Below are positions 1,572 to 32,735 of a stretch of 32,735 bases of DNA, piece after piece. The stretch lies in sequence record NC_034625.1; one strand, written 5' to 3'. The translations under genes and the position numbers were made by a program. The notes under the pieces are model-generated. The model saw nothing but the letters and a program-made list of their open reading frames with translations. It did not search any database and was not told the origin of the DNA. Each line of letters starts with the position of its first letter. Positions within the stretch are counted from its first letter, which is position 1.

Positions 1572-1602
1572 AGAGAAAAATTTAAATATGAGTTTAGACA
1601 TA
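1572..1602 (+). promoter_or_regulatory. Class-1 (early) promoter
   Basis: Purine-rich BRE AGAGAAAAA, TATA TTTAAATA (1581-1588), then TGAGTTTAGACATA. The same layout occurs at six other loci. Confidence 0.85.
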
Positions 1603-1623
1603 TGTAAAATCAGTGAAAGAAAA

Positions 1624-1914
1624 ATGAACATGGATGAAAAGATAAATCAAATTTTGCAAAAGGCAAAAGAAGAAGGAGAAGCTTTTTTAGTTTCACTTAC
1701 TCCAGAACAATTGAGACAAAGTGGATTTGAAGAAAGTGAGGACTTTTTTAACTTTGAATTTGTGAAAATATATGTTCTATATGATGATCAATTCAAACTA
1801 AAATATGTTTTTAACAATGACCCAAGTAATTTTCTATACGAATCAAAAGAGGACTTAGGAGGATTAAAGGAGTTTATAGAAGTTGTTAAAAAATATCTAG
1901 AAGTTTCAGAATAA
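1624..1914 (+). CDS. Acidic 96-aa hypothetical protein; candidate anti-defence gene
   Basis: Start moved from 1588 to ATG 1624 because 1588 lies inside the promoter. SD-like AGTGA upstream and a T-rich terminator after the stop. Confidence 0.8.
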   Translation: MNMDEKINQILQKAKEEGEAFLVSLTPEQLRQSGFEESEDFFNFEFVKIYVLYDDQFKLKYVFNNDPSNFLYESKEDLGGLKEFIEVVKKYLEVSE

Positions 1915-2104
1915 TTTTTTTCTTTTTTTGTTTCAATTTTCCCAGTTATCGTTTTTTTCTCCAAATTTCTATTTTTTCATGACTATTTTCCAAAATTGTT
2001 AACATTATGAAGAATTTTTTTCAAAGTTAGGATAAAAATTCATGACTAACATTTATTGAGAGAAACATAAATATGTCATAAATATAAAAGAAAATCGATA
2101 TATT

Positions 2105-2629
2105 ATGAATATAGTTTTAAGAGAATTTGATAAAGAAAAATTTAATATAAATATCACTGCATGGTTAGATATTGATAATGATATTCAAAGTTGTTATACA
2201 AATTTTAAAGAAATTACGATAGTTACAATAATTCAAATGATTTCTGAAATTGTAGAAAAAGATGGCTGGGATTTACAATATTTTGAGAAAGATGAAGAAG
2301 AAAAATTATTTAATGCATTTATGAAAAATTCTAAAATTACAGTAAGATTAAATAAAAAGATAGATGAATTAAATTATGTTTTTGAAGAAACTATTGTTGA
2401 ATTTGATTTTCCAGAAATTGAGAAAAAGAGAATTGCGGAAATATATTTGAGTAATATACTTAATAATCTTTATTATTTTGATGAATGTATTATTTATAAT
2501 TTAGATGAAGGAGATATTAATTTAATACCAGAAGTTTTAAGTGATGAAGTTTATCAATTATTAAGTCCTGATGAAATAAAGGGAAAATTTAAGGAAAAGA
2601 TAGAGAAAATTAATACTGAAAAAGTATAG
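2105..2629 (+). CDS. Acidic 174-aa hypothetical protein
   Basis: ORF track; preceded by a class-2 promoter ATAAATATGTCAT (2067-2079). Confidence 0.8.
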   Translation: MNIVLREFDKEKFNINITAWLDIDNDIQSCYTNFKEITIVTIIQMISEIVEKDGWDLQYFEKDEEEKLFNAFMKNSKITVRLNKKIDELNYVFEETIVEFDFPEIEKKRIAEIYLSNILNNLYYFDECIIYNLDEGDINLIPEVLSDEVYQLLSPDEIKGKFKEKIEKINTEKV

Positions 2630-2644
2630 ATGAGATGTGAAAAT

Positions 2645-2806
2645 ATGAATTTAAATACATCAATAGATCCAATATGGCTTTTAGTTATTGCTGGAATTTT
2701 TTATGAATTATTATTTATCTTTTTCTTATTAGAATTAAGACAGATAATGAAACGAATTGAAGAAGAAGAATTAGTCAGAATGTTAAAAAAGAAATATGGG
2801 GACTAA
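2645..2806 (+). CDS. 53-aa single-TM membrane protein (not in ORF track)
   Basis: Manual translation MNLNTSIDPIWLLVIAGIFYELLFIFFLLELRQIMKRIEEEELVRMLKKKYGD. It fills the gap after the 174-aa gene; an in-frame alternative ATG lies at 2630. Confidence 0.6.
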   Translation: MNLNTSIDPIWLLVIAGIFYELLFIFFLLELRQIMKRIEEEELVRMLKKKYGD

Positions 2807-2905
2807 ATGCATTTTTATGCAAAATGTGATGTGGGCTACAAAGATAAAAGTTTAGAGAAAACTTTAAATATAAGTTTTTACATAGATTATATTGGTGAAA
2901 AAAGA

Positions 2906-3073
2906 ATGAAAGAAGTAAAAGTTGGTTCAACTACATATTACATACAAGATGAAGACGATTTAATAAGCGTAATTCATCAGTTGGCCCGTGAGGGCTATAG
3001 TATAAGTCAAATAGCTCAAGTGTTAGGAATAAGTGAACGACAAGTAAGAAAGTATTTGGAAGATTGTTGGTAA
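2906..3073 (+). CDS. 55-aa HTH protein, SIRV1 ORF56a / SIRV2 ORF83 (Aca8-like) family
   Basis: HTH motif GYSISQIAQVLGISERQVRKYL. Start moved to ATG 2906, downstream of a class-1 promoter (TATA 2863-2870) and SD GGTGA. Confidence 0.8.
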   Translation: MKEVKVGSTTYYIQDEDDLISVIHQLAREGYSISQIAQVLGISERQVRKYLEDCW

Positions 3074-3290
3074 GTTAATTCTTTTTTTAATTTCCAATTT
3101 TTTCTTTTTCTTTTTCGTTTTTTTCATTAATTTATTTTTCTCTTATTTTTATCTAATTTTATCGATAATTTTTTTCACTTTTGACATATTATTTCTAAGT
3201 TTGAGAAATTTAGATAGCGTAAAATGAAAACGTAAAAGTTTGAAGAAAACTTTATATATAAGTTTTTACATAATAGATATTAGTGATAAA

Positions 3291-3539
3291 ATGAGTCAAG
3301 TAGAAAAGCAAAAAGTTAAATTAGGAAGAAAAGAAAAAGCGGTTTTAGATTTTTTGAAATCGTATCCTCAAGGAATATGGAAAGATGAGGTTATTAGACA
3401 TTTTTCATGGGCATCAAGATATGACTCTGTAATGAGTAAACGTTTGCACAATCTGCAGAAAAAAGGATTAATAGTGATAAAAGCAGAAGTTAATCCTTCC
3501 TCTGGAAGGTCAAAACAAAGAGTATATTTAAAACAATAA
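3291..3539 (+). CDS. 82-aa winged-helix DNA-binding protein
   Basis: wHTH pattern with wing (KRLHNLQKKGLIVIKAEVNPSSGRSKQRVYL). Start moved to 3291, after class-1 promoter TATA 3251-3258. Confidence 0.75.
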   Translation: MSQVEKQKVKLGRKEKAVLDFLKSYPQGIWKDEVIRHFSWASRYDSVMSKRLHNLQKKGLIVIKAEVNPSSGRSKQRVYLKQ

Positions 3540-3770: not shown

Positions 3771-4034
3771 TCACTCTTTTATAATTTTTGAAACTTTTCC
3801 AATTGTTACATTTATTGTATTGCCAAAAGTTGAAAACCAAATTTCAAAATTTAATAGTTTATTATCAATTTCTAAATAACCAGCAATTTTATTTTTATTT
3901 TTTGTATAAAATATTATTCTTGGTTTTTCGTTAAAAATAAAAGCTTTATTTAGTAAATTTAAAATATCTTTTTCATTCATATTTTCAACTTTGTTTTTTA
4001 TTTTTTCCATTTGTTCTAAAAATTTTTCACTCAT
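3771..4034 (-). CDS. 87-aa hypothetical protein (rudiviral)
   Basis: ORF track; class-2 promoter at 4060-4072 and SD GTGA. Confidence 0.75.
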   Translation of the reverse strand: MSEKFLEQMEKIKNKVENMNEKDILNLLNKAFIFNEKPRIIFYTKNKNKIAGYLEIDNKLLNFEIWFSTFGNTINVTIGKVSKIIKE

Positions 4035-4086
4035 GTTTTCACAATTAATGTTATATTATATGACATATAAAAAGATTTTTATTTTT

Positions 4087-4704
4087 TCAGAATAAAGAGC
4101 CAAAACATTTTGCTTTAAATTCACAATTTTTACATAAATAATTATTTGCTCCTGGTATAGTTTTATAATCTTGTGATTTCATAAATTCTTTAAATTTCTT
4201 AATCCAGTCAATTGTCTTTTTCATATATTCATCTAATACTTTTTTGTCTATTTGAAATTGTCTAACTTCTTTATTTATTCTATTTAAATATATAATGTAT
4301 ACGTTATCAATTTTATAGTTTTGTTGTTGTAGTAAATAATAGTAAATTGAGACTTGGTAAAGATGATATTCCTTTATATTGAAATAGTTACTTGTGATAG
4401 TTTTAAGTTCTATAAGATCATTATTACAAATTAAGTCAATTCTTCCAGAAATTTTTATATTTTCAATTTCTCCTTTTATTTCAATTTCTGCTTTACAATT
4501 TAGTTTTTCTTGAAAATAATGTTCTACTTTTTCATGATATTGTTCTCCTAGGTCTAAAGTAATTTCATTTACGGCTTTCTCAAATTCAAATTTTCTACTA
4601 AAATAGCTTTTTCTAAAACAAATTCCAATTTCTGATGGAAATATTGTATCTTCTGGATATTTCATTTTAAAACTTTGTTTTACAAATTCTTCATAATTTG
4701 TCAT
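4087..4704 (-). CDS. cas4: Cas4/RecB-family Fe-S nuclease (SIRV2 gp19-like)
   Basis: PSEIGIC (Cys1), GRIDL...IELKT (PD-(D/E)xK), YQVSIY motif and C-terminal [10 protein letters not shown]. Confidence 0.95.
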
Positions 4705-4706
4705 TT

Positions 4707-6014
4707 TTAACCACCTAAATTACTAAATCTCATTAAGTTTATTATTCTGTTACAAATTTCTTCATTTTGTACTTTTCCAATTTGTAGATCTATATCTAGA
4801 GCTTGTAATAAAATTTGAATATCGATACTTTGCTCTTGTCTTCTAGATTCCAAATTATTGCAATTTACATAGTTATTAATACTATTTATTTTCTGTTGAA
4901 TTAATTCAATTAATGCTTTTAAAATTGATGGATATAATACTCTTGCATTTATAATTTTATCATAAGTTTTTTTAATTGCTAATTGAATAATATGAATTCT
5001 ATCTAAAATTGCTGAAGTAAATATTTGATAATTTTGTAAATAATCTTCTATATCTGGATTTACTAATTTATTAAGTGTATAAGAATATGGATTTCCAGCG
5101 TAAATAATTGGAATACATTTTTGAATAGTAGCAGATTTTGACTCTGTTCCAGCACCTCTTGTCCAAATACAATTTTCAATTCCAGTTGATAGAGTTGAAT
5201 TTATAGTATTTAGTTCTTTTGTTGAAAAACCATCTTTCCAATTTTGAATTTCATCAAATATCAATCCATTTGATAAAAATACAGCTCCATACATATTGTT
5301 TCGAGCATCGTAAACCAAATTGGCATATGTTGGAGCTTCAGTGTAATATCTAAAATTGAAAACTTCTTGTAAAATCATAAAAGTTGTAGTTTTTCCAGTT
5401 CCTCTGTTGGAGATTTCAATATAGTTAATTTGGCGTTTTGTTATTGGAGATTTGAAGAGCGGAAATAATCTCGGTAGGAAGAGGAAAATGTCATTTATTT
5501 CCATTTTTGAAGGATCATATCCAAAACTTTGAAGTAGTAAAGCATATGTTTGATATTCTTGATTTGCTAATTCAAATAATTCTTTTGCAATTTCATAATT
5601 GTTGGGTGGCTCAATTGAATAAATATCATAAATACGCCAACCTTCTATACCTTTTCTAATTTTGACAAACATGTAACTTGTAATTAAATTATAGAAATCT
5701 TCAGGATTATCAGCTATAAAATGTGGATCGAAATTTGTAGTAAAACCATTTTGAAATTTTGCTATTATTTCATCATCTTTAACTTTAAAATTAACAATTT
5801 TTGAAATAAACTTAACTTCATCATTAAATAATAAATAGCTTTGAAAATATTGTTGATCAATTCCGCGTTTATAAGCTTTTAAAATTTCAATTTTCTTTTG
5901 TTCTTCTATTTGTTTTCCAGAAAGAATTATATTAAGGACTCTTTCTGTATCTCTTGGATTATAAAAAAAAGAATGAGATTTTATTTTTTCAAGAAGTTGA
6001 TTTGAACTACTCAT
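4707..6014 (-). CDS. AAA+/P-loop ATPase (SIRV2 gp18-like)
   Basis: Walker A RGTGKTT and Walker B LIFDE; 435 aa; in an operon between the SSB and cas4 genes as in other rudiviruses. Confidence 0.9.
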
Positions 6015-6039
6015 GAAAAAAAATTTATCTTATGACGTT

Positions 6040-6441
6040 TTAAAATTCATCTTCTACGTTTTTCTTTTCTCTTTTTTTCTCTTTCTTTTGCTCTTTTTGA
6101 CTTTCTGTATCTTCTTCTAATTCTAATTCTTCCTCTTGAACTGTATTATTATTCCTTGGTGTGAATTTTACATATTCGTTTAATAAGTCAGCATATTTAT
6201 TTAAGAATTCTGCAATTAATCTTAAATCTTCACTGTCATTTGCAGTTATTCCTAACTGCTTTCTGAAATTGTTTTGACTATGTATAGTCATAGAATATCT
6301 TACTTTACTATCTTGCGGAATTGCATTTAATTGAACTACCAATCTTTTTAATCCCTTAATTTTTAAAATTCTACTGGCTATTTTATTGTTTTGTTTTGCT
6401 TGACTTCCTAATTGATCTATTATTTCTTTAAGGGACGCCAT
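6040..6441 (-). CDS. ssDNA-binding protein (SIRV2 gp17-like)
   Basis: 133 aa with a low-complexity acidic/basic C-tail; first gene of the conserved SSB-ATPase-Cas4 operon; class-2 promoter at 6470-6484. Confidence 0.8.
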   Translation of the reverse strand: MASLKEIIDQLGSQAKQNNKIASRILKIKGLKRLVVQLNAIPQDSKVRYSMTIHSQNNFRKQLGITANDSEDLRLIAEFLNKYADLLNEYVKFTPRNNNTVQEEELELEEDTESQKEQKKEKKREKKNVEDEF

Positions 6442-6541
6442 ACATACTCCCTAGTTTTATCTTTTTAATATGACATATTTATATATTTATAAAAGTACAA
6501 GCCATGATATTTAGAAGTTAAAAAAGAAGAGAAAAAAATAT

Positions 6542-6814
6542 TTAAATTACCTTGAAGAATATAGATCTTATTAATTTAGATATTTTCATGTTGTATTTAT
6601 TTGCTAATTCTACAAGTTTGTTGTAATATAATTCATCGACAGTAAAAAAAACACGCTCATCATAAATTTCACTGATTTCAATTTCTTTGAATTCTTTTTG
6701 AGAATTTAGAATTCTGTCAATTTCTTGTTTTATTGTCTCTCTTTTCTCATAAAAAAGATTTTTATACTTTGATGGTATACGTAATTCGATATACTTATTT
6801 CTTTGCTTTTTCAT
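6542..6814 (-). CDS. RHH-type DNA-binding protein, possibly two RHH units
   Basis: C-terminal ERVFFTVDELYYNKLVELANKYNMKISKLIRSIF fits the strand-helix-helix pattern; the N-terminal KYIELRIP segment looks similar. Confidence 0.6.
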   Translation of the reverse strand: MKKQRNKYIELRIPSKYKNLFYEKRETIKQEIDRILNSQKEFKEIEISEIYDERVFFTVDELYYNKLVELANKYNMKISKLIRSIFFKVI

Positions 6815-6885
6815 AATTTTAGATATTTTCGGGCATTATATAAACATGACATATACATTTAAATGTCAGGTTTTCATTTACATGT

Positions 6886-7230
6886 GTGAACTGTGAAAAA
6901 GTTTTTAGTTATCATTTTCTTTATGTTTACACGTATTTTATTACTATTGCTACAAATTATCGTTATAATGATACATCTAAAATCTATAAAAAATTCAGAC
7001 AATATATTTATAATCATGATAAAAATTCTCATATTTATAGTGTGAAAGAATATACAACAAAATTTCATGGTTTACATTATCATGTTTTAGTTTTCACGAA
7101 TAAACGACTTGATTATTCCAGAATTCATAAGAAAATGCCTTCTCATAGTGATATAAATATTCAATTAGTTCCAAAAACAAAAAAAGATATAAAAAAAGTT
7201 TTAACTTATATGACTAAATCTAAAAAATAA
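6886..7230 (+). CDS. rep: HUH-superfamily replication initiator (rudiviral Rep)
   Basis: Motif 1 YFITI, motif 2 GLHYHVLVF, motif 3 YMTK; GTG start 28 nt after TATA TTTAAA (6858). Confidence 0.92.
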   Translation: MNCEKVFSYHFLYVYTYFITIATNYRYNDTSKIYKKFRQYIYNHDKNSHIYSVKEYTTKFHGLHYHVLVFTNKRLDYSRIHKKMPSHSDINIQLVPKTKKDIKKVLTYMTKSKK

Positions 7231-7231
7231 A

Positions 7232-7519
7232 TTATTTAGTTTGTGACTGTTGTTGAGAACTTTGCTTTTTCTGTGCTAAAGAATTTACATCTGAAAGAGT
7301 ATCCATATTCAATAATGCATTAACGCCAAGAGTAGTGGTATCTTTAATACTTTCTATTGCACTAATTGTAGATTTTGTCATCTGATCTACTGCAATTTGG
7401 AATGATTGATTTGCTTGCTTTTGGTTGTAGAGATATACTATTTCTCCAACTACATATGAGCCTATTAGTACACCCATTAAGACAAGAAACCCTTCAATTG
7501 CATATTGTATTGTTGACAT
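7232..7519 (-). CDS. pvap: Virus-associated pyramid protein (PVAP, SIRV2 P98-like egress protein)
   Basis: N-terminal TM helix plus DQMTKSTISAIESIKDTTTLGVNALLNMDTLSDVNSLA, closely matching the P98 sequence as I recall it. Confidence 0.92.
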   Translation of the reverse strand: MSTIQYAIEGFLVLMGVLIGSYVVGEIVYLYNQKQANQSFQIAVDQMTKSTISAIESIKDTTTLGVNALLNMDTLSDVNSLAQKKQSSQQQSQTK

Positions 7520-7620
7520 TTCAATTTTATTATATGCAAATTACTTAGTAATAAAGTTTATGCAAAAAATCGAAATATATAAATATGTCATAATGTTCAT
7601 TTATAAAATGAGGAAAAATG

Positions 7621-7779
7621 ATGGAGAAAGGGAAACCTGAAAGAGTTGTATTTGGAATTAATATAGATAAAGAATTGAAAACTAAATTAAAAGTTTATTG
7701 TGCTGAACATAACATTACATTAACTGAAGCCATAGAAACTGCAATTTCGGAATATTTACAAAAGAGGCAACAAAAATGA
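7621..7779 (+). CDS. svtR: SvtR-like RHH transcription repressor, 52 aa (not in ORF track)
   Basis: Manual translation MEKGKPERVVFGINIDKELKTKLKVYCAEHNITLTEAIETAISEYLQKRQQK, matching SIRV1 ORF56b/SvtR. Alternative ATG at 7618; class-2 promoter at 7578-7591. Confidence 0.88.
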   Translation: MEKGKPERVVFGINIDKELKTKLKVYCAEHNITLTEAIETAISEYLQKRQQK

Positions 7780-7922
7780 GAGTCATAACAGTAAAAATTG
7801 ATGAAGATTTTCTAAAAGAAGTTGACAAATATGCCATGAATCATAAGTTAAACAGATCTGAAGTTGTCAGATTAGCAATTAGAGAATTTTTAAGTAATCA
7901 TGCTAATTACGAAAGTCGATAA
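7776..7922 (+). CDS. Second RHH (CopG/NikR-like) protein, 48 aa (not in ORF track)
   Basis: Manual translation MRVITVKIDEDFLKEVDKYAMNHKLNRSEVVRLAIREFLSNHANYESR; ATGA overlap with svtR. Confidence 0.85.
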   Translation: MRVITVKIDEDFLKEVDKYAMNHKLNRSEVVRLAIREFLSNHANYESR

Positions 7923-7989
7923 AAATAAAAGAGAAAATTAAGCAAAAAATATTTTTTTATTTTCCATTTTCTGACAAATATATTTCTGG

Positions 7990-8232
7990 TCATTTTCTTC
8001 TTTTTAATCTTTCAATTTCAGCTTTAAGTTCATCAATTTCATCATAAATATCTACAAAGATATCATAAATTGCTACATATATAATTGCAAAAATTCCAGA
8101 TGCAAAAAATGTTGATATTATAACTATTGGCATATTTTTTACAAGAATTCCTAATGACATGACTATTAAAGCTAAAGACATTAAAGCTAAAAAAATTAAG
8201 AAAACTATTATTTCACGAAATTCTCTTTCCAT
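7990..8232 (-). CDS. 80-aa membrane protein (2 TM plus C-terminal coiled coil)
   Basis: Two hydrophobic stretches followed by DEIDELKAEIERLKRRK. Confidence 0.7.
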   Translation of the reverse strand: MEREFREIIVFLIFLALMSLALIVMSLGILVKNMPIVIISTFFASGIFAIIYVAIYDIFVDIYDEIDELKAEIERLKRRK

Positions 8233-8244
8233 TTTTTCTCATTT

Positions 8245-8586
8245 TCATTTTTCGTTATCTGACGTATATATACTTTTATTAATCTGACCACATAATATTG
8301 TTAAATCAAAGAAAGGTTTGTTATATCTGTAATTTACTCTTATATATGGCGAATATCTAAAAGTCCTTTTAATGTAACTTATAATTCCATTCGCTCTTTT
8401 TATATATAAATTATGTGCCATAATCAGTCTTATTTTTAAAGTTAGCAAAGTGTCGTTATCCATGACGTGATAATAATAAATATTAGTTGGATAAAATGCG
8501 TTCAGCCAATTCAACACTTGATCGGTAAACTTTCTACATTCAATTATGATTATATCTTCCATGATTTTCATATTCATAACTGACAA
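8245..8586 (-). CDS. Hypothetical protein (~110 aa), divergent from the capsid gene
   Basis: ORF track (TTG start; ATG 8577 is an alternative). Confidence 0.65.
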   Translation of the reverse strand: MSVMNMKIMEDIIIIECRKFTDQVLNWLNAFYPTNIYYYHVMDNDTLLTLKIRLIMAHNLYIKRANGIISYIKRTFRYSPYIRVNYRYNKPFFDLTILCGQINKSIYTSDNEK

Positions 8587-8681
8587 TTAAATACTTTATT
8601 TTCAGTTAACATATAGTCTAATTAATAGTTATGAATTTCCCTAGTTATTACTGATATTTAATCCACAATTTCATCAACTTA

Positions 8682-8720
8682 TATACATTATATAGTATAT
8701 ACGGCGTGAAAATTTATATT
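8682..8720 (+). promoter_or_regulatory. Capsid gene promoter with class-3 palindrome variant
   Basis: TATACAT-TATAT-AGTATA (8682-8699), then TATA TTTATA at 8713, ATG at 8751. Confidence 0.65.
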
Positions 8721-8750
8721 GTAGCAATTTTAAATATAAATTGACCAAAA

Positions 8751-9155
8751 ATGGCAAAAGGAAGAACACCAAGATCATATAGTCAAAGATATGCAAAATG
8801 GTCAGCTAAATTTGCATCATTTTCAAATCCTACCGTAGCATCTACTATATTATCAAATGTTTCGCCAGTTGCACAACAAAATTTCCAAACTCATGTTCCA
8901 AAATTTACTAGCGTAAATGAACAAGTTTCCAGCGTATTGTCAGAATATGGAATTACTGGTCCTAACAGAGCCATTTACCAAGGCTTTGGTTTGAAGGTAG
9001 CTAGAGCTTTAAATAGACTTGGCGGTGGACCGGCGTTAGTAAATATGATCAACGGTTTGAAAGCTTATTATATTTCAGCATTTAATGCTAATCCAACTGT
9101 TTTGGATGCAGTCACCAACATTATAACTGGTTCACCAACTGGTTATGTAAGCTAA
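8751..9155 (+). CDS. mcp: Major capsid protein (134 aa, SIRV2-fold)
   Basis: MAKGRTPRSYSQRYAKW...GFGLKVARALNRLGGGPALVNMINGLKAYYISAFNANPTVLDAVTNIITG is the rudiviral MCP signature; T-rich terminator follows. Confidence 0.98.
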   Translation: MAKGRTPRSYSQRYAKWSAKFASFSNPTVASTILSNVSPVAQQNFQTHVPKFTSVNEQVSSVLSEYGITGPNRAIYQGFGLKVARALNRLGGGPALVNMINGLKAYYISAFNANPTVLDAVTNIITGSPTGYVS

Positions 9156-9266
9156 AAAATTATAGAATATCTTTTAAGCTATTTTATTTTTTTATTTTTT
9201 CTTTTTCAGAACTTTAGTTCAAATTTAAAATTTAAAAAAATTTGTTTTTAACTTTTTAACTTGAAA

Positions 9267-9437
9267 TTAATCATTATCATCAATTTCTGTTTCTATATAC
9301 TCATAATTTGTTTTACTTATTCTTTTACAATCACTAATTTTTACACCGGGATGATGTTTTTTCAAATGTGTAATCATAGCTTTTCTAGTTCTCGTTAAAT
9401 GTTGACAAATTGGACACTCAAATAAAAAGATACCCAT
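9267..9437 (-). CDS. 56-aa C2H2 zinc-finger protein
   Basis: CPIC-x12-HLKKHH. Start moved to ATG 9437 because a class-2 promoter lies at 9450-9467. Confidence 0.8.
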   Translation of the reverse strand: MGIFLFECPICQHLTRTRKAMITHLKKHHPGVKISDCKRISKTNYEYIETEIDDND

Positions 9438-9473
9438 GATATTTTTTAGTGTCATGACAAATAAAAAATTCAC

Positions 9474-10505
9474 ATGGAAGTGTCGAACACAGTTCGCCAC
9501 AAAACCGTAATTTTAACCATGAATTACTCATCTATTCGTAATGTGAGTGAAGATATTGCACAAGTTTTACGAAAAAATGGAGAAATTGTAACAATTTCAA
9601 CAAATCCATATTTAATTCCACAATCTGATAAATTAATAATTTTTATGCCTTTCCATCCACCATCTCTAAATCCATATTTGTATGCATTTAGAGAATTTAA
9701 AGGTAAGAAGTATTTTTATACAACTTGTGATGGTTTACCTAATACAAATATTGTAAATCAATATCTATTAGAAAATATAATATTTATTCCAAATTCAAAG
9801 TTTACAGCTCAAAATCTTCAAGAAGTTGGTCTTCAAACTGATCTTCCAGTTTTCCATGGTATAAATTTTGAAATTGTAGAAAAAGCTGAAAAATTATCCC
9901 AACAATTAAAACAAAAATTAGACAAAGATTTTCCAAATACAATAAAATTCGGAATTGTTAGTGGTTTAACTAAGAGAAAAAACATGGATTTAATGTTAAA
10001 AGTTTTCCAGGAGATAAATACTAAAATTCCAGAATTAGCCAAAAAAGTTCACTTCTTTGTAATTTCGCATAAAGACTTTAAAAATTATGAAGTTCCAGCA
10101 AATGTGCATTTTGTTGCTGAATTTGGACTAAATCCAAGAGAATATATTTATGCATTTTACAAAGTTATGGATTTTGTAATTGTTCCTTCTGGAACTGAGG
10201 GCTTTGGACTTCCAGTTTTAGAAAGCATGGCTATGGGTACTCCAGTAATTCATCAATTAATGCCACCATTTGATGAATTTACCTCATGGCAGTGGAACCT
10301 TTTGATTAAATCTAATGAAGTTGAAGAATATTATGATAAAACGCATGGACAGAAATGGAAAATTCATAAATTTGATATTCATGACATGATAAATGCAATA
10401 TTGATAGCTTCAGAATTGAAAGATAGAGAAGAAAGAAGTAGAAATCTAAAAGAATTAGCTAAGAGATATAATATAGAAAATTTATATGTCAGATTTTTAG
10501 AGTGA
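9474..10505 (+). CDS. GT-B (GT4-like) glycosyltransferase, 343 aa
   Basis: PSGTEGFGLPVLESMAMGTPVI (E-x7-E motif). Confidence 0.93.
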   Translation: MEVSNTVRHKTVILTMNYSSIRNVSEDIAQVLRKNGEIVTISTNPYLIPQSDKLIIFMPFHPPSLNPYLYAFREFKGKKYFYTTCDGLPNTNIVNQYLLENIIFIPNSKFTAQNLQEVGLQTDLPVFHGINFEIVEKAEKLSQQLKQKLDKDFPNTIKFGIVSGLTKRKNMDLMLKVFQEINTKIPELAKKVHFFVISHKDFKNYEVPANVHFVAEFGLNPREYIYAFYKVMDFVIVPSGTEGFGLPVLESMAMGTPVIHQLMPPFDEFTSWQWNLLIKSNEVEEYYDKTHGQKWKIHKFDIHDMINAILIASELKDREERSRNLKELAKRYNIENLYVRFLE

Positions 10506-10568
10506 CTTCAAGAGCTGGTTAATCGAAAAATTTATATGTTTTGAATGACATATAATTATAGTGAGACT

Positions 10569-10694
10569 ATGGAGGAAGTAATAATTGAATGTAAAAATTT
10601 CACAAAGTTTCATGTAAAGAAAAAGAAAGGTGTACAAATTAAAAATATCATACAAATGTGTCAAGATTTCGGATTAGAAATTAAGGTGTATTAA
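10569..10694 (+). CDS. 41-aa basic hypothetical protein (not in ORF track)
   Basis: Manual translation MEEVIIECKNFTKFHVKKKKGVQIKNIIQMCQDFGLEIKVY; GTGAG upstream; ends 3 nt before the next gene. Confidence 0.5.
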   Translation: MEEVIIECKNFTKFHVKKKKGVQIKNIIQMCQDFGLEIKVY

Positions 10695-10697
10695 AAA

Positions 10698-10997
10698 ATG
10701 CCAAAATATTATTATTGTTATATTTGCAAAACTACACTTATTGGAAAAAAAGAATTCAAAAAACATGCACAAAAACATTTTCATAATGAAAGATGTCCAT
10801 ATTGCAATATGAAAACAAAAAGATTGTCAATTCATTTAGCATATTATCATTTACAATTTAGAAGAAAAGCAGTCTTATTAAGGGATTTAGCAATATTAGC
10901 AAAGGAATACGGTAATATAAACTTTCTTTACGACAAAGATTTAAAAATTGACAATTACATCAAATTTCATATAAAAAGAATGATGAATAAGTTATAA
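10698..10997 (+). CDS. Double C2H2 zinc-finger protein, 99 aa
   Basis: CYIC-x12-HAQKH and CPYC-x9-HLAYYH. Confidence 0.85.
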   Translation: MPKYYYCYICKTTLIGKKEFKKHAQKHFHNERCPYCNMKTKRLSIHLAYYHLQFRRKAVLLRDLAILAKEYGNINFLYDKDLKIDNYIKFHIKRMMNKL

Positions 10998-11021
10998 TTC
11001 TTTTTTTAGTTTGTATTTTTT

Positions 11022-11219
11022 TCACTTCTTGTTTTCTGAGTTTTTGTTTAATAAAACTGCTATATCTTTGCTTATTTCTTCAGATATATTTTTAATTATT
11101 TCTAAAGCTTCTAATATTTCATCTTCTTTAAGATCTTCATTTTCACTAATTTCATCAATTAGACCAAGTTGTAATTGTAATAGAACCTCAAATTTTATTA
11201 AATCTATCTTTTTTACCAT
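11022..11219 (-). CDS. 65-aa acidic helical hypothetical protein
   Basis: ORF track; class-2 promoter at 11247-11260. Confidence 0.65.
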   Translation of the reverse strand: MVKKIDLIKFEVLLQLQLGLIDEISENEDLKEDEILEALEIIKNISEEISKDIAVLLNKNSENKK

Positions 11220-11256
11220 CTTTCCATCTAGATAGAAATTTAAAATATGACAAATA

Positions 11257-11845: not shown

Positions 11846-12014
11846 GTTTCTTTATTTCATAAAACAAGAATAAATAAACTCAAAGCAAATTTGCTATATA
11901 CATTATATTATGTATATGCATTTGTTAATGAACGCGTAAAGCATAATTAGATTATGAATTTTGAAAATATTTTAATTTTTATCAATTAAAATTGTTAATA
12001 CTTTTATCTAAATC

Positions 12015-12173: not shown

Positions 12174-12186
12174 GTTTATCAATTCT

Positions 12187-19862: not shown

Positions 19863-19885
19863 TGTCAAGTTAATAATTTTTTCAT

Positions 19886-21586: not shown

Positions 21587-21594
21587 GGTCAAAC

Positions 21595-21759: not shown

Positions 21760-21761
21760 AA

Positions 21762-23297
21762 ATGTCTTCAACTTACTGCGTTCAATTACCAGAAAATCTT
21801 TTATTATTATCTATGACTACAGTAAATCCTATAAACTTTACATCTTTGCAATTTTCATTAAGCGTAAATTCGCTAGTTATATTTCTATTCTCAAAATATC
21901 CTTTTAATTCTGGTTATTACAATAATTTTTGTATAAATCAAGATGAGTTTGGATTTGCACAAGTTGGACAAACTTTCAATATAGATCTATCAAATTATCA
22001 AGGATATTATATGCTAATTTTAATTTATCCACAAGGAATTAATTTAAAGAGTTCTAAAAGTTGTGTCTCGATTCAAGGTTTAACTATGACTTTTCAGAAT
22101 ACAACAATTTCACCAATTACAAGTGAAACTGTAATTAACAATTTTGATGGTCAAGAAGAAACCGGATTTTGTACATGTTATGATGGTCAAAGTCATGTAA
22201 TAGAAATTCTATGTAATAATTCAAATTATGTTTCTGCTATTTTATTAAATAATTTAAATAATCAATTACTAATAATGACTTGTCAAGGATTTGTATATGA
22301 AAATAATACAACTGTAGGATTTATAACGCCAAGTACATGTGGTACTTTTGGTTCATATTTAACAGCAGAAATAACATTTATTGCAAATCAATCAGTTATA
22401 GATTTTCTAAATAATAATAATATCTCTTATAATATTTTATCATCTACTGAATGTCAACCAACTTATAAATTATTACCATGTACTTTACCATGTAAATCGT
22501 TTTACCAAATTACAAAATTATTATCTCCACCAACTAAATATTCTATAATATCTTCAAAATTATGGAATGAAATTGTACAAGACCTATATCTAACTTATAG
22601 TGTATTTAAATATATTAATTATTTAACACAATATGCATATTTAGACTATATATATCCTACAATTTTAGACTTTTATAATTTTTATGAAAACTTTCAACCA
22701 TATCCATTTACTCAATTATTGTATGCACAAAAAGGAATTCCATTAACTGTAAACGATTTTAACAAATTAATAGATGCAATTGTAAAATTAGCAAATGAAA
22801 ATGATATAAAATTGAAAAAAGGACTTTCTTATGTTCAGCGTGATCAAGTCGTAAGAGCTTCACAATTTGCAAATATAGTTTATAATGTTAATCAATTTCT
22901 AACTTTTAATTATAATCAATATTTTCTATTAGATTGTAATGGATCAATTTTCTCGAATTTATTGAATAAACAAAATGCATTTTTAAATGTCATAATTAAT
23001 AATTTAGTAACTTCACTTAATATTCCTTCAAACGTTTATATTAAAAACTTATTAATATATACTTCAAATCAAACTATTTATAATTATGGTGTAATAGATA
23101 AATTAATAATTAATATTAATAACGGCGAAATTTATCTTAATGGAAATTCATTTATAAATTTTCTACTTATAACTGACAATAATAATAATATTTATGTAAA
23201 TGATAATTCAGTAATAAACAATTTAATTTGTATTAGTAATACTGGCACTATAAATATCTCATCAAATGCAATAATTAAAAATAATCAATGTGCTTAA
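21762..23297 (+). CDS. 511-aa putative virion/fibre-associated protein
   Basis: Cys-containing beta-rich N-half, WNEIVQDL-type helical motifs and an Asn/Ile-rich C-terminal repeat suggestive of a beta-helix. Confidence 0.7.
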   Translation: MSSTYCVQLPENLLLLSMTTVNPINFTSLQFSLSVNSLVIFLFSKYPFNSGYYNNFCINQDEFGFAQVGQTFNIDLSNYQGYYMLILIYPQGINLKSSKSCVSIQGLTMTFQNTTISPITSETVINNFDGQEETGFCTCYDGQSHVIEILCNNSNYVSAILLNNLNNQLLIMTCQGFVYENNTTVGFITPSTCGTFGSYLTAEITFIANQSVIDFLNNNNISYNILSSTECQPTYKLLPCTLPCKSFYQITKLLSPPTKYSIISSKLWNEIVQDLYLTYSVFKYINYLTQYAYLDYIYPTILDFYNFYENFQPYPFTQLLYAQKGIPLTVNDFNKLIDAIVKLANENDIKLKKGLSYVQRDQVVRASQFANIVYNVNQFLTFNYNQYFLLDCNGSIFSNLLNKQNAFLNVIINNLVTSLNIPSNVYIKNLLIYTSNQTIYNYGVIDKLIININNGEIYLNGNSFINFLLITDNNNNIYVNDNSVINNLICISNTGTINISSNAIIKNNQCA

Positions 23298-23366
23298 TAT
23301 AGAACTTTTACATATTCGGTTTTAATTTTAAATTAAAAAGTTCTAAATTTGACCTCATAATGCTCT

Positions 23367-23849
23367 TCATAATTTACAAAATATAAATTCTTTATTATCA
23401 TCAGTTATAAAAGTTAGAACTGTACCGTATAATTTTCGCATTAAATCAAATCTGTTTTCTGTCCATTCATGAATAGCTATACAATATTGTTTGTATTTTT
23501 GTAATTGAGAAAAATCAAGTTTACTTTCGCATCCCTCACAATCCATAACTAAAATATCAGCATTTGGATATTCTTTTCCAGTCCATTCGCCGTAAACTTC
23601 AACTTTATCACATATTTGAAATTCTTTACAAACTTTTTCTTTAAATCTTTTATTCAGCTCATCACTTTTTTCATAACCAATTATTTTCTTTGCACCTTTA
23701 AGAAGAAAATACAAAGCAGAACTTCCACAATCATTTCCAATTATTATAATTGTTTTATTTTCAACTTGCAATTTTCCATATGCATAATCAAACTCATGCC
23801 AATAACAACACTCTAATTTACAAAAATAATCTTTATAATTTATACTCAT
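23367..23849 (-). CDS. SAM-dependent methyltransferase (FkbM-like)
   Basis: IIIIGNDCGSSALYFLLKGAKKIIGYE (motif I/II) and ILVMDCEGCE; SD GAGGT upstream. Confidence 0.85.
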   Translation of the reverse strand: MSINYKDYFCKLECCYWHEFDYAYGKLQVENKTIIIIGNDCGSSALYFLLKGAKKIIGYEKSDELNKRFKEKVCKEFQICDKVEVYGEWTGKEYPNADILVMDCEGCESKLDFSQLQKYKQYCIAIHEWTENRFDLMRKLYGTVLTFITDDNKEFIFCKL

Positions 23850-23851
23850 GA

Positions 23852-24655
23852 TTAAATGACCTCAAACAAAGCATAAACTTTAGCTTTCCCGGTAGCCCAT
23901 GCGTAAACATTTGCAGGATTATTTACATGTATTTCTAAACTATCATTTGGCAAAATTGGGAAATTATTGTATAGATTATTGCCAATGTAAACTATGTAAT
24001 TACTTAAATTCTGTAATATTATTCTAACAGTTTCTATGGATGGACCAGAATATAAAGGACTAGGAGTTGTGGAAACATCTAATTGTAGACCTTCTATAGT
24101 CGGCGGTGATAAATACAAACTTAATTTATTTATTGTATTAGCTAAACCAACTGTAGCTAAATATACATAGTCAAGTACATATTCTATAGAATTCGCAATA
24201 ACATAAATTGCATTTTGTAATGAAATTCCTAATTTTTTAGAAATTGAATTTATCAAAATATAAAATGACTCATAAAAGTTATCAAAATTTTGTGTAAGTG
24301 TATTACTAATTTGATTAGGTAATTTGATAATTGAGTAATATAATTGTTCATTTGAATATAAAATTAAATTTATTTGTTGTTGAGCAGTTGAAATAAATCC
24401 AGCGATATAAATTGGATCTAGTTCTGTTAAAACTGGTTGTCCAGCTATATAAATTTCATCATAGAAAAATCCAGAACTAGCATTTATTGAACCTGGAATT
24501 GTTAAATTTCCATTTTTTAGAATTGAAGTAACTGCATTTCCACCAGTCTCATACAATTGAATAAGTAAAAGTGATGCAGTATTCCACATGGAAGAAGTCA
24601 ATCTCTGAAATGGTGAAGCTAACAAACTTGAAATTGAAGCATATGTAATGCTCAT
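23852..24655 (-). CDS. 267-aa protein (SIRV2 ORF269-like), probably virion-associated
   Basis: Class-3 promoter (24698-24717); shares motifs with the 566-aa protein. Confidence 0.75.
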   Translation of the reverse strand: MSITYASISSLLASPFQRLTSSMWNTASLLLIQLYETGGNAVTSILKNGNLTIPGSINASSGFFYDEIYIAGQPVLTELDPIYIAGFISTAQQQINLILYSNEQLYYSIIKLPNQISNTLTQNFDNFYESFYILINSISKKLGISLQNAIYVIANSIEYVLDYVYLATVGLANTINKLSLYLSPPTIEGLQLDVSTTPSPLYSGPSIETVRIILQNLSNYIVYIGNNLYNNFPILPNDSLEIHVNNPANVYAWATGKAKVYALFEVI

Positions 24656-29008: not shown

Positions 29009-29566
29009 TTAACTTAATAATTTGTCTAATTGCTCATCATAAATTACTTCAACCTTTCCATCTTTAATCACTATTTTACCTGACAAATTCTCGCCGAAAT
29101 ATTGTATCAAATATCCGTATCCAGCAGTTCTAACTCTACCGCTTATGCTATACTGAATTTCTACATCTCCATTACAATAAAGATGTTTAACCTCTCCGAG
29201 ACTTCCTCTAGGACTTCTCAATATTTCAAAATCTTCACATTCACCGCTAAGCACTTTGAAATAAACACCGCCTCTATAACCTGATGGTAATTCAATAACA
29301 TATAATGTATTTCCCGGTTCAAACTTTATGATTGGAGTTCCCTTTTCTGTTACAACAATTTTTGCATTTGCTAATTTTACCGTAAACTCATTAACTCTAT
29401 CAAATTCTATAAAACTTCCATTTTCACCGCTTTCTACAAATCTTCCACTGAAATATATAACTCTTCCTCTAGCTCTATCACCAATTTCAGTTATATCCAA
29501 TGCCTTGTCCTCAAAAAATGGATATTTCTCATCTTTTAAACTAACTTGAACTTTTAACTTATTCAT
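29009..29566 (-). CDS. 185-aa beta-rich hypothetical protein; candidate anti-defence gene
   Basis: Class-1 promoter (TATA 29609-29602) and SD GGTGA. Confidence 0.8.
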   Translation of the reverse strand: MNKLKVQVSLKDEKYPFFEDKALDITEIGDRARGRVIYFSGRFVESGENGSFIEFDRVNEFTVKLANAKIVVTEKGTPIIKFEPGNTLYVIELPSGYRGGVYFKVLSGECEDFEILRSPRGSLGEVKHLYCNGDVEIQYSISGRVRTAGYGYLIQYFGENLSGKIVIKDGKVEVIYDEQLDKLLS

Positions 29567-29825
29567 TCTCTTATCACCAATATCTATTATGTAAATCTTT
29601 GTATTTAAAGTTATCTCTTAATTTTTACGTTTATATCTTACGCTATTTTTATCATTAAATTTCTTACTGTATAATTCCTCTTGATTTTAAAATATTATCC
29701 CAAAATTGAGAAAAAATAAGCATGAAGATAGATGATAAAGAGTAGAAAAATAAAATTAATAAGTTAAAAATTATAGATTAACAAAAAGAAAAAAATTATA
29801 GATAAAAAACGATTAATTTAAAACT

Positions 29826-30548
29826 TTAATCAACTTTATGACTTTTAGGTCTTGGATGCGTTATTAAATAATATTTATTTCCACTTAGCATAACTGAATT
29901 TTCGCCATGGTCTGCTGATTTCATAACAAATGTTGTAGAATTTTGAAGATATATCAAAAATGCAATACCAGGTGTTGAAAATAAATCAGTTGCTAATACA
30001 GGATTTGAAAATTGTATCTCATGATTATAAATTGTCAAACTGTTTACATGATTGAGACTAAGATTTAATTCGCTATTTGGTGGTGGAACTTCATAAATTT
30101 CCAAATTGCCTTGATTAAAAACTAAAGAAAATTGATATAATTGTCCTTTAATAAATATATCGAAAAAGTCTATTGCATAATTGGTATAATTAATAAGTAA
30201 TTTTTTAGAATTAAGATTTGAAAGTTCTATTTGTTTTAATATAAAGTTTTTCATATCCTCTAAACTTCTTGTAATTTTATTTCTTCTATAAACTGAAATT
30301 ATTGATGGAGCTGGCGTATAATATATGCCTTTAGTTTCATCTAATTGATTACCATCATACTTAAAACAACCGTTAAACGTTAATCCTGACCTAGAAATAT
30401 ATTTAGAACAATTTACATAATGATTTGAAATTAACGAAATTTTTGTAACTTGACCATTTGAATGTTTCAACATAAAAACGATTGGCAAATATTTTATTTG
30501 TTTTAAAATTTTAACTTCATACTTTTTTTGGTCTTCAACTTGGGACAT
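29826..30548 (-). CDS. AcrIIIB1-like anti-CRISPR protein (type III-B inhibitor family), 240 aa
   Basis: Size, position in the right arm, SADHG motif and C-terminal HPRP tail resemble SIRV2 gp48 as I recall it. Start moved to ATG 30548 after SD GGTGA. Confidence 0.65.
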   Translation of the reverse strand: MSQVEDQKKYEVKILKQIKYLPIVFMLKHSNGQVTKISLISNHYVNCSKYISRSGLTFNGCFKYDGNQLDETKGIYYTPAPSIISVYRRNKITRSLEDMKNFILKQIELSNLNSKKLLINYTNYAIDFFDIFIKGQLYQFSLVFNQGNLEIYEVPPPNSELNLSLNHVNSLTIYNHEIQFSNPVLATDLFSTPGIAFLIYLQNSTTFVMKSADHGENSVMLSGNKYYLITHPRPKSHKVD

Positions 30549-30727
30549 ACGACTTATCACCCGTAAATGAAAATATGTTATATGACAAATTTATAACTTT
30601 CTTTATTTTTCGATTTACAAACTTTCTAAAATGTTAGTATTACTATTTGAAACGTGAGAAAAATTATGCATGGAGAAAGAAAACAAAAAACAAAAAAATA
30701 AAAAATAAAGAATACGAAAGAAAAAAA

Positions 30728-31042
30728 TTAGTATATATTCCAAAGTAATAAAGCAATTAGCTTTAAAATTTCTTCACGCGTACCTTCAATTACTTTTTCA
30801 TTGTTTACATCTTTGTAAACTTTATAAAGCCTTGCAATTTTTTGTAGTATCTTAACAAAATCAATATCTTCTGGATTTAAATAAGTAAAGCTAATTTCAT
30901 TTTTCGTATCATTTATTCTTATGTTCAATTTGTTATATTCTATAGACTTTCCCTTTACTTCAGCTAACTGAATTAAAAAATTAACATTAACTTGTTGTTC
31001 CAATACCTCTTTCATTTGACTTTGACTTTTTTCTTGACTCAT
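30728..31042 (-). CDS. 104-aa hypothetical protein; candidate anti-defence gene
   Basis: Class-1 promoter (TATA 31083-31076), SD GGTGA; start moved to 31042. Confidence 0.8.
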   Translation of the reverse strand: MSQEKSQSQMKEVLEQQVNVNFLIQLAEVKGKSIEYNKLNIRINDTKNEISFTYLNPEDIDFVKILQKIARLYKVYKDVNNEKVIEGTREEILKLIALLLWNIY

Positions 31043-31129
31043 CTTTTTCACCATTATCTATTATCTCTAAACTTATATTTAAATTTTTCTCTATCTTTTC
31101 ATGTCTTCATTTTTCGACTTATAATTATG

Positions 31130-31318
31130 TTAATTTTCATGATCATTATACTTTCTTTCATAAATGACTTTCCCATGAATTTTTAATACACCAGTTCTAT
31201 CAAATTCAGCTAACGCATTCAAATACTCCTTGTAAGCTTTGATAATATAATCTATTCTATTATGCATTCTTTCTAGAATTTTTTTCTGCTCAGCAGTTAA
31301 TTTATGTACTCTTGTCAT
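31130..31318 (-). CDS. 62-aa hypothetical protein
   Basis: ORF track; class-2 promoter at 31350-31363 with a duplicated upstream module. Confidence 0.75.
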   Translation of the reverse strand: MTRVHKLTAEQKKILERMHNRIDYIIKAYKEYLNALAEFDRTGVLKIHGKVIYERKYNDHEN

Positions 31319-31527
31319 TTTTTATCATCTACAAATCATCATACGTTATATGACAAATTTAAAAGTATCTTTAATTTTAGATTTACGAATTTCCTAAAAT
31401 GTTAGTATTATTATCCCAAACATGAAAAAAAATATTGATAAAAATAGAAGATAATAAACATAAAAATAGGAAGTTAAAATATAAAATTATAAAAATAAAA
31501 TAAAATTAAGGAAAAAAGTTAAAAAAA

Positions 31528-31755
31528 TTATTGAATTTGTTGTTGTGAATTAAAACGAGAAACGAGAGAAGAAAATAATTTTTGTGCATATTTTTGATCA
31601 AATCCATGATAATAAAAAAATCTATTTTTTTCTGAAATTTTATAAACCGCAAATCTTGACTTTGAACAACAATTACATTTAGCTAAAGCAAAATTGTTCA
31701 TTTGTTGAACTATTTCAAAGTCATGAAATTTTACATCAATAATTTGAATCTTCAT
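31528..31755 (-). CDS. 75-aa Cys-containing hypothetical protein; candidate anti-defence gene
   Basis: Class-1 promoter (TATA 31793-31786); start moved to ATG 31755; CNCC motif. Confidence 0.75.
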   Translation of the reverse strand: MKIQIIDVKFHDFEIVQQMNNFALAKCNCCSKSRFAVYKISEKNRFFYYHGFDQKYAQKLFSSLVSRFNSQQQIQ

Positions 31756-31916
31756 AACTCTCAATTATATATATGTCTAAACTTATATTTAAAGTTTTCT
31801 CTAAACGTTTATCTCTCTATCTATCTACTTTTTTATCTTATATTATCAATTTTTATCTCAAAATAGAAAATATAAAATAGAAGATAATAAAAATAAAAAT
31901 AAAAAAAACAATTAAC

Positions 31917-32255
31917 TTAATATAGACTTAATGACTTCCAGCCGGTAAAGAAATTGAAAACGTATACTATTTGATGTTTTTGGCTCTGTGAATTATATTT
32001 AATTCTTTCTTCAACCAGCAATATTACCGTATCACTCTTGGGAATAACAGCATATTCAAATTCTCTTGTATTATCATCAGCATCATTAGTATTCATCAAT
32101 ATCAATTCATATTCGCCATAAATCTGTTTGATTTTTGCGCTCCCATCTTTCCCTTTATACTCTTTAATTGTCAAAAAATATTTGGCCTCATTTCTTCCCT
32201 CTTTTATCGACTGTTCTATTAATTGATTGATTTGTTCATCGGTTAATTTTTTCAT
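31917..32255 (-). CDS. 112-aa hypothetical protein; candidate anti-defence gene
   Basis: Class-1 promoter (TATA 32295-32288), SD GGTGA. Confidence 0.8.
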   Translation of the reverse strand: MKKLTDEQINQLIEQSIKEGRNEAKYFLTIKEYKGKDGSAKIKQIYGEYELILMNTNDADDNTREFEYAVIPKSDTVILLVEERIKYNSQSQKHQIVYVFNFFTGWKSLSLY

Positions 32256-32291
32256 CTTTTCACCAACATATTATATGTAAATTCTCCTTTA

Positions 32292-32735
32292 TAAATTTTT
32301 CTCTCCTTTTTTAGATCTCTATTTTTCGTTTCTTCTCCATCATCTCTCTCTATAGAGAACGTGTAAATTCTGTCTCTCCAATTTCTCTCATAACTGCAGA
32401 GATAAATTGTTTCCTAACGGTGAAATCGCGTAAAAAAACCTATTTTGGGTTTGATCATAATTTATTAATTATAAACTACTAACTACATAACTATATAATT
32501 ATTATATTGTATAACTAGATAGTTCATATATTCTCAAAATTATTAAATCTCCTTACAATTTCCTCCATAAAATACTGATATAAATCCAAACTGTATACAG
32601 AATCTTCTATTGAATTGAAAGAAAAAAAGAAACTATATTTTTCACTTGAACTATAAAACTATAATTATTAAATTATAAACTACTAATTAGTAGTTAGCTA
32701 ATTATATAATATACTAACTATGTAGTTATATAATT
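32292..32735. repeat. Right inverted terminal repeat, truncated (444 bp)
   Basis: Reverse complement of 1141-1584; the window ends inside it. Confidence 0.95.

Follow-up and report, generated by a model that had tools for sequence, protein, structure and literature searches.

Why do seven small genes at the two ends of an archaeal virus genome, whose products do not resemble one another, begin with almost the same stretch of DNA? The window analysed here is sequence record NC_034625.1 (KY744230.1) of the rudivirus SIRV10, 32,735 nucleotides long and with a G+C content of 25.4%. Positions 4000–24000, compared by megablast, match this record at 100% over their full length. The window is the complete deposited record, which is labelled 'partial genome'. 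An earlier note on this DNA had described seven self-contained cassettes, confined to the two arms and marked by a shared early promoter, and had offered their products as a shortlist of new anti-defence genes. We conclude that the seven sites are probably copies of the early-gene regulatory sequence of the Rudiviridae that is associated with the helix-turn-helix (HTH) protein Aca8, and that the cargo which they drive most likely serves counter-defence.

Seven promoters form a single class

Reading and aligning both arms recovers all seven of the look-alike promoters. Their TATA boxes start at 1581, 2863 and 3251 on the plus strand and at 29609, 31083, 31793 and 32295 on the minus strand. Each consists of a purine-rich transcription factor B (TFB) recognition element (BRE), a TTTAWAWA box and a TTTnnA(C/G)ATA element. 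The core of BRE and TATA box, (A/G)AGA(A/T)AA(A/C) followed by TTTA(A/T)A(A/T)A, is present in 7/7 copies. We refer to these sites as class-1 promoters.

A motif scan, suggested in the earlier note, was made with the 22-nt pattern TTTAWAWANRAGWWTWDASATA, allowing up to two mismatches and taking the expectation from dinucleotide shuffles (n=100). The matches are exactly the seven sites, against 0.71 expected, and none of the 100 shuffles reached seven. A 32-nt log-odds weight matrix, extending from the BRE to ACATA, was trained on the seven SIRV10 sites and used to scan both strands. The seven sites score 32.5–43.4 bits (19.6–41.1 bits in leave-one-out scoring), everything else in SIRV10, on both strands, stays at 8 bits or less, and shuffled genomes give 15 bits at most. 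Class 1 is therefore a discrete class of exactly seven sites in SIRV10. Rfam found no family above threshold anywhere in the window, and a scan for bacterial sigma-70 promoters and hairpin terminators did no better than shuffles; such models are irrelevant for an archaeal virus.

The geometry of the sites is equally constant. The seven aligned promoters have 75% identity per column over 81 nt, and the distances from TATA start to ATG are 43, 43, 40, 43, 41, 38 and 40 nt, within the range of 38–43 nt claimed before. A (G/A)GTGA Shine-Dalgarno (SD) sequence lies 5–8 nt before the ATG in six of the seven, the exception being the 31793 site, again as claimed. A run of 7–8 T is found within about 15 nt after the stop codon; this had been noticed for most of the genes and holds for 7/7 open reading frames (ORFs). 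No site lies further in than 3251 on the left or 29609 on the right, which puts all seven within 3.3 kb of the record's ends, and each is aimed from the terminus to the centre. Each cassette is thus monocistronic, inward-facing and provided with its own T-tract terminator, which bears out their description as self-contained and confined to the arms. In an all-against-all BLASTP comparison of the arm proteins the best pairwise E was 0.029, so that the cargo is unrelated.

On the plus strand of the left arm, promoter 1 (1571–1623, 42.3 bits) has the BRE GAGAGAAAAA, the TATA box TTTAAATA at 1581, TGAGTTTAGACATA and the SD sequence AGTGA, and precedes gp01 (1624–1914, 96 aa), which is followed by a T-tract after its stop. 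Promoter 2 (2853–2905, 42.7 bits) precedes gp04 (2906–3073, 55 aa), and promoter 3 (3241–3290, TTTATATA, 36.8 bits) precedes gp05 (3291–3539, 82 aa). On the minus strand of the right arm, promoter 4 (29567–29619) is the most divergent copy, TTTAAATACAAAGATTTACATA, with 32.5 bits, or 19.6 when left out of the training set; it serves gp44 (29009–29566, 185 aa). Promoter 5 (31043–31093, 39.1 bits) is the AGATA variant and serves gp46 (30728–31042, 104 aa). Promoter 6 (31756–31803, 43.4 bits), the sole copy without a GGTGA-type SD sequence, serves gp48 (31528–31755, 75 aa), and promoter 7 (32256–32305, TTTATAAA, 34.3 bits) serves gp49 (31917–32255, 112 aa).

A perfect dyad with 7-bp arms, AAAACTT-N7-AAGTTTT, lies across the TATA box of the gp04 and gp05 promoters, and is present with 6-bp arms at gp48. 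The idea that this dyad is an operator common to all seven promoters was rejected, as it is found in 3/7 copies only; symmetry therefore does not define the operator. The gp05 and gp44 promoters (3214–3289 and 29571–29646) are 82% similar over 76 nt, and their similarity reaches about 35 nt upstream of the BRE (AGCGTAA..AAACGTAAAA), farther than in the other copies. These two promoters may represent a sub-class or the product of a recent conversion event.

Start codons

The ORF lengths of 96, 55, 82, 185, 104, 75 and 112 aa given in the earlier note are right if translation begins at the ATG downstream of each promoter. Three of the RefSeq annotations differ. The annotated start of gp01, at 1588, falls inside the TATA box, and is here amended to 1624, where the orthologues begin. 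That of gp04, at 2807, gives a protein of 88 aa and would make the promoter coding; the amended start is 2906 (55 aa). The annotated start of gp46, at 31054, precedes the SD sequence, and is amended to 31042 on the basis of homologue lengths: leaving aside the window's own record, 23 of the 25 homologues are 104 aa long. Promoter positions and orthologue lengths agree on 1624, 2906 and 31042; the three RefSeq starts are incompatible with the promoters and need correction. The label of gp04 as 'terminase small subunit' is evidently a misnomer driven by its HTH, the protein being, from its sequence, Aca8.

The same regulatory sequence in other rudiviruses

SIRV10 is among the genomes analysed by Bhoobalan-Chitty et al. 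(2024, Nat Commun 15:3699; PMC11065993). These authors found that 11 of 13 early genes of SIRV2 share a regulatory sequence around a purine-rich BRE and TTTAWATA. The genes include aca8, which always carries it, acrID1 and acrIIIB1; their timing is immediate-early, with repression by about 1 h. The HTH protein Aca8 was proposed as the repressor of the shared sequence, and virus-specific versions of that sequence were used to predict anti-defence genes (ADGs). Supplementary Data 1 of PMC11065993 lists for SIRV10 gp01 as ADG.07, gp04 as Aca8, gp05 as ADG.02 (a putative 'MarR-like' regulator), gp44 as ADG.06, gp45 as AcrIIIB1, gp46 as ADG.01, gp47 as ADG.17 (viral antitoxin), gp48 as ADG.08 and gp49 as ADG.05. 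The shortlist is thus not new: all seven genes are published predictions, and a promoter-based shortlist for SIRV10 has been known since 2024. The sequence described there and the one described here concern the same virus and genes, the same BRE and TTTAWATA with conserved flanks, the same terminal single-gene cassettes, and aca8 under the motif. Nothing essential is different, except that the paper also counts gp45 and gp47, which are assigned below to a second promoter type, and that it gives no amended starts for SIRV10 gp01, gp04 and gp46; these corrections come from the present analysis.

The matrix trained on SIRV10 was also run on SIRV9, SIRV11 and the Icelandic virus SIRV2. In SIRV9 it finds nine sites, upstream of the orthologues of all seven genes and of two further cassettes, and in SIRV11 four sites, before orthologous cassettes. 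In SIRV2 it finds nine arm genes, namely both copies of aca8, gp47 (AcrIA3), gp03 (acrID1), gp02, gp05, gp08, gp52 and gp53, at 14–33 bits, and at every site exactly 43 nt separate the TATA start from the ATG. The shared promoter is thus of the early-gene type, as the earlier note had supposed, carrying the same regulatory sequence as SIRV2 early genes that include tested anti-CRISPRs: activity has been reported for SIRV2 gp03 (acrID1) and gp47 (AcrIA3).

The SIRV2 early genes (aca8 as gp01/gp54, acrID1 as gp03, AcrIA3 as gp47, and others) have the same inward orientation in the arms as those of SIRV10. The cargo, however, is almost entirely different. AcrID1 paralogues dominate SIRV2, whereas BLASTP, Pfam and PDB searches of SIRV10 revealed none. 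In addition, aca8 is duplicated and lies within the inverted terminal repeat (ITR) of SIRV2, but has one copy in SIRV10, on the inner side of the ITR boundary.

A model for the regulon

The Aca8 of SIRV10, gp04, shows 57% identity to its SIRV2 counterpart (gp01/gp54) in the 55-aa form. The HTH that had been read in gp04 is confirmed by Pfam, with HTH_23 at 6e-8 and HTH_29 at 4.7e-7. Since the class-1 motif at 2863 stands before aca8 itself, the gene is part of the set that its product is predicted to bind and repress.

On the basis of these observations, we propose the following course of events. On entry of the linear genome, the BRE and TTTAWAWA core would recruit host TFB, TATA-binding protein (TBP) and RNA polymerase. 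The TTTnnACATA element comes after the TATA box and before the predicted transcription start, which is placed some 30 nt from the TATA start. Downstream follow a leader of roughly 10–13 nt with a GGTGA SD sequence, a single small ORF and the oligo-T terminator. From both genome ends the seven monocistronic cassettes would fire inward, until Aca8, once the early burst was over, bound the sequence common to them and closed the regulon down. What the remaining cassettes encode is accessory and strain-variable, and most likely directed against host defence, either as anti-CRISPR proteins or as inhibitors of other immunity.

In the acr-aca operons of bacteriophages, a strong early promoter is autorepressed by an HTH Aca protein. 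The proposed logic is the same in both cases, a burst of counter-defence followed by repression by a small HTH protein of the same regulon. The arrangement differs, since the bacteriophage genes form one operon, whereas in SIRV10 copies of one archaeal promoter are scattered over many monocistronic cassettes.

Several points weigh against this model. The early timing proposed for SIRV10 is carried over from expression in SIRV2, and a paper of September 2026 describes the binding of Aca8 to the shared sequence as predicted only. Four of the seven class-1 promoters lack the dyad. The arm genes with the best homology-based claim to an anti-defence role, gp45 and gp47, have no class-1 promoter. 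The presence of gp05 (ADG.02) in every SIRV4–11 genome of the table in PMC11065993 is what one would expect of a regulator more than of a fast-evolving inhibitor. Finally, our literature search found no published test of ADG.01, ADG.05, ADG.06, ADG.07 or ADG.08.

The cargo proteins

The earlier note had recognised none of the five proteins without an HTH, and neither do the databases: gp01, gp44, gp46, gp48 and gp49 have no Pfam, NCBIfam or PDB match above noise, and each falls in a PHROG of unknown function (PHROG 15508 for gp01 and PHROG 27628 for gp48). The profile searches that had been suggested for them, and structure searches with models of gp44 and gp49, revealed no kinship to the characterised archaeal anti-CRISPR proteins (Acrs) AcrID1, AcrIIIB1, AcrIII-1 or AcrIA, and BLASTP no similarity to gp45. 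A putative anti-defence role for the five is nevertheless a reasonable, if indirect, argument, of guilt by shared promoter. It is also favoured here because none of them belongs to a family with a known alternative function. The cassettes behave as accessory genes, in that their presence and position vary among close relatives.

For gp44, the largest of the five, 45 homologues were found, each about 185 aa long and with an identity of 58% or more. None of them has a name beyond 'hypothetical', and those with a named source come from a rudivirus and a Sulfolobus metagenome-assembled genome. The published ADG.06 cluster comprises SIRV9, SIRV10 and isolates V3 and V60, and homologues are also found in SIRV6 and SIRV11. 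AlphaFold2 generates a confident all-β model for gp44 (predicted local distance difference test score (pLDDT) 92.1, predicted template modelling score (pTM) 0.88). Foldseek finds no neighbour for it in the PDB (best E 0.04, template modelling (TM) score at most 0.28), and in BFVD the SIRV11 orthologue only.

The gp49 family (ADG.05) is broader: in a set of 1.84 billion proteins it makes up 27 clusters at 50% identity, and it has the conserved motifs EG..EA.Y.L, YGE, IIPK and YVF..GWKS. The protein is modelled as two N-terminal helices and a seven-stranded β domain (pLDDT 91.5, pTM 0.79), for which Foldseek again finds no neighbour in the PDB (best E 0.09, TM score at most 0.40). A function based on structure was rejected for both gp44 and gp49, the Foldseek matches being at chance level (E at least 0.04, TM score at most 0.40) and to generic β-sandwich proteins.

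Other candidate relationships found no further support. gp01 and gp49 both have an N-terminal 'INQ...EG', but as distant paralogues they receive an hhalign probability of 1.5%. For gp46, a relationship to SSV1 A-100 was indicated by weak single-sequence matches (4lid, E 0.1; DUF5517, E 0.0035) and stays an unconfirmed lead; a profile of its 22-sequence family has no PDB match at E of 1 or below. Guilt by association was considered for the ADG.05 homologues in two distant contigs (L011 and L012) and rejected, since neither AcrIIIB1 nor any other SIRV10 arm protein adjoins them.

The alternative that survives best accepts that the promoter class is real and early, and takes most of the five cargo proteins to be factors for host takeover or for competition between viruses rather than inhibitors of immunity; such factors might act on host transcription, on the cell cycle or on the membrane, or bring about superinfection exclusion. 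It draws on the fact that two of the seven cassettes encode DNA-binding proteins, on the lack of homology to any known Acr in the Pfam, NCBIfam, PDB and BLASTP searches, on the breadth of ADG.05, with its 27 clusters in varied contigs, and on the concession in PMC11065993 itself that there may be false positives among the predicted ADGs. However, the SIRV2 genes under this promoter that have been tested are anti-CRISPRs (acrID1; gp47, AcrIA3), 25 of the 54 SIRV2 genes, 11 of them under this promoter, are dispensable in a CRISPR-deficient host, and the cassettes vary between closely related strains. We therefore consider this alternative possible, though doubtful.

One could go further and suggest, tentatively, that at least one of the five proteins is an inhibitor of host defence whose mechanism, or whose target system, has no counterpart among known archaeal viral inhibitors. 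The best candidates for such a protein may be gp44 (ADG.06) and gp49 (ADG.05), because their models are confident and have no neighbour in the PDB, nor, for gp44, any in BFVD beyond the orthologue.

The role of gp05

The 82-aa protein gp05 had been read as a winged HTH (wHTH) protein. Sequence searches of Pfam, NCBIfam and PDB give no support for this, and the assignment rests on inspection and on the published label 'MarR-like'. A homology of gp05 to SIRV2 AcrIA3 (gp47) was considered and rejected, as the two give no alignment at all.

A second alternative gives gp05 a larger part: with or instead of Aca8, it would regulate the class-1 promoters, or else it would be an anti-CRISPR that represses host cas promoters. 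Its gene adjoins aca8 and has the same promoter with the same perfect dyad, it is ubiquitous in SIRV4–11, and there is a precedent in SIRV2 AcrIA3, a wHTH protein under this promoter which is reported to be an anti-CRISPR repressing a host cas promoter. However, gp05 has no sequence similarity to that protein, the profile searches do not support its wHTH status, and SIRV2 has the regulon, yet no ADG.02 member in the published table. This makes either role for gp05 rather unlikely, and we retain Aca8 as the predicted repressor. It is worth adding that, because SIRV2 AcrIA3 is reported as an anti-CRISPR, the exclusion, in the earlier note, of the HTH proteins from the anti-defence shortlist may be wrong.

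A second promoter class

Two genes that lie between the marked cassettes were absent from the list in the earlier note. The first, gp45 (29826–30548, minus strand), is a full-length homologue of SIRV2 gp48 (AcrIIIB1), with 39% identity and E 8e-49. The second, gp47 (31130–31318, minus strand, 62 aa), is a Phd-like viral antitoxin of the ADG.17 family, of which one member, SMV1 gp44, co-purifies with a host Doc toxin. The upstream regions of gp02, gp45 and gp47 score less than 8 bits with the class-1 matrix. They share instead about 100 nt of upstream sequence which includes ACTAACATTT.

The core of these promoters, WTAAATWTGTCATAWA (TATA+GTC), has 19 matches in SIRV10 against 3.8 expected. Across the genome, 13 of the 19 precede an annotated start by 30–60 nt, a distance at which position alone would put about 3%. 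They comprise the regions 2041–2104 (+) before gp02, 30549–30640 (−) before gp45 and 31319–31420 (−) before gp47, together with 10 further sites in the core genome; the promoters proper are at about 30575–30640 for gp45 and 31347–31420 for gp47. Rudiviral promoters with a virus-specific GTC element downstream of the TATA box were described by Kessler et al. (2004), in the summary given in PMC5569661. Compared with the promoters as summarised there, class 1 is likewise a BRE/TATA archaeal promoter in the same genome, and three of the GTC promoters (gp02, gp45 and gp47) are also in the arms. The class-1 sites, however, do not have the TGTCATA element of the GTC promoters, have TTTnnACATA instead, and are found only in the arms. 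SIRV10 thus has two promoter classes.

The use of the motif as a marker of anti-defence genes therefore stands in part. It does define one class on arm cassettes, but the class-1 motif is an incomplete marker, neither necessary nor sufficient, because the best-supported genes, gp45 and gp47, use class-2 promoters.

Also in the left arm, between the gp01 and aca8 cassettes, is a two-gene unit, gp02–gp03 (2105–2806), which is outside the published ADG list. The 174-aa gp02 has no family match, and the 53-aa gp03 is an apparent single-pass membrane peptide. The unit is kept beside aca8 in SIRV9, SIRV11 and an IMG/VR contig (L007).

Terminal repeats and movement of the cassettes

The inner part of the left ITR (1141–1584) matches the reverse complement of the right ITR (32292–32735), and both repeats stop within a promoter, 1 on the left and 7 on the right. 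In each of these promoters the BRE and the initial four bases of the TATA box are part of the ITR, and the arms diverge from the fifth TATA base.

Comparison with close relatives shows that other boundaries are similarly placed. The region 31076–32542 of SIRV10 (right arm: the end of the ITR, gp49, gp48 and gp47) is 93.6% identical to 1701–236 of SIRV9 (left arm, inverted), and the junction falls on the TATA box of gp46 in SIRV10 (31083–31076) and on that of gp04 in SIRV9 (1694–1701). In SIRV11, the ADG.01 cassette is in the opposite arm (SIRV10 30680–31113), with a high-scoring pair extending from 30 nt upstream of the TATA box to 48 nt past the stop, and the block from ADG.07 to Aca8 (SIRV10 2005–3230) is also in the opposite arm. 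The other junctions between SIRV10, SIRV9 and SIRV11 lie within intergenic regulatory repeats. This supports the view that whole cassettes move, from arm to arm and from genome to genome, in the manner expected of accessory modules. Because the rearrangement junctions fall in shared promoter or regulatory repeats, these two genome pairs also suggest that the repeats act as crossover sites for cassette exchange. The promoter copies may then double as sites of homologous crossover by which cassettes are swapped between arms and strains, a suggestion as tentative as that of a novel inhibitor.

That the shared sequence is mainly a scar of recombination or duplication, left by cassette shuffling or ITR homogenisation, rather than a selected regulatory signal, would fit the ITRs that terminate inside promoters 1 and 7, the SIRV10/SIRV9 junction on the gp46 TATA box and the other junctions in intergenic repeats, but is highly improbable, given that the similarity is sharply bounded from BRE to SD at a fixed distance from the ATG, that it is kept between Yellowstone and Icelandic viruses before unrelated genes, and that conservation falls on the known contact elements of TFB and TBP. 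The two explanations are compatible, since a selected promoter can also be a crossover site.

The ends of the record have some further features. Bases 1–297 and 298–594 are the two arms of an inverted repeat, each 297 nt long, which abut directly and are 97% complementary. It looks as if the record continues through a terminal hairpin that is covalently closed, or through a replicative junction of the head-to-head type, which would place the true left terminus near 297/298. On the right the record stops at the position matching 1141, so that about 1.1 kb is missing there. Inside the left ITR, at 1033–1158 (+), a BRE/TATA-like sequence, GAAAGAAAAGTTTATATA, is placed 28 nt upstream of the ATG of a very hydrophobic, unannotated ORF of 29 codons (1069–1158). 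At that spacing its transcript would be leaderless; the site is perhaps there by chance in AT-rich DNA.

Implications

What this analysis adds to the published predictions is the set of amended starts for gp01, gp04 and gp46, two confident models of orphan fold (gp44 and gp49), the clean separation of the class-1 promoters from the genome-wide TATA+GTC class, and evidence that places rearrangement junctions in shared regulatory repeats. For archaeal viruses more generally, the conserved early promoter provides a handle for finding counter-defence genes, an approach which has already yielded, in published work, an AcrIA and the first archaeal viral antitoxin.

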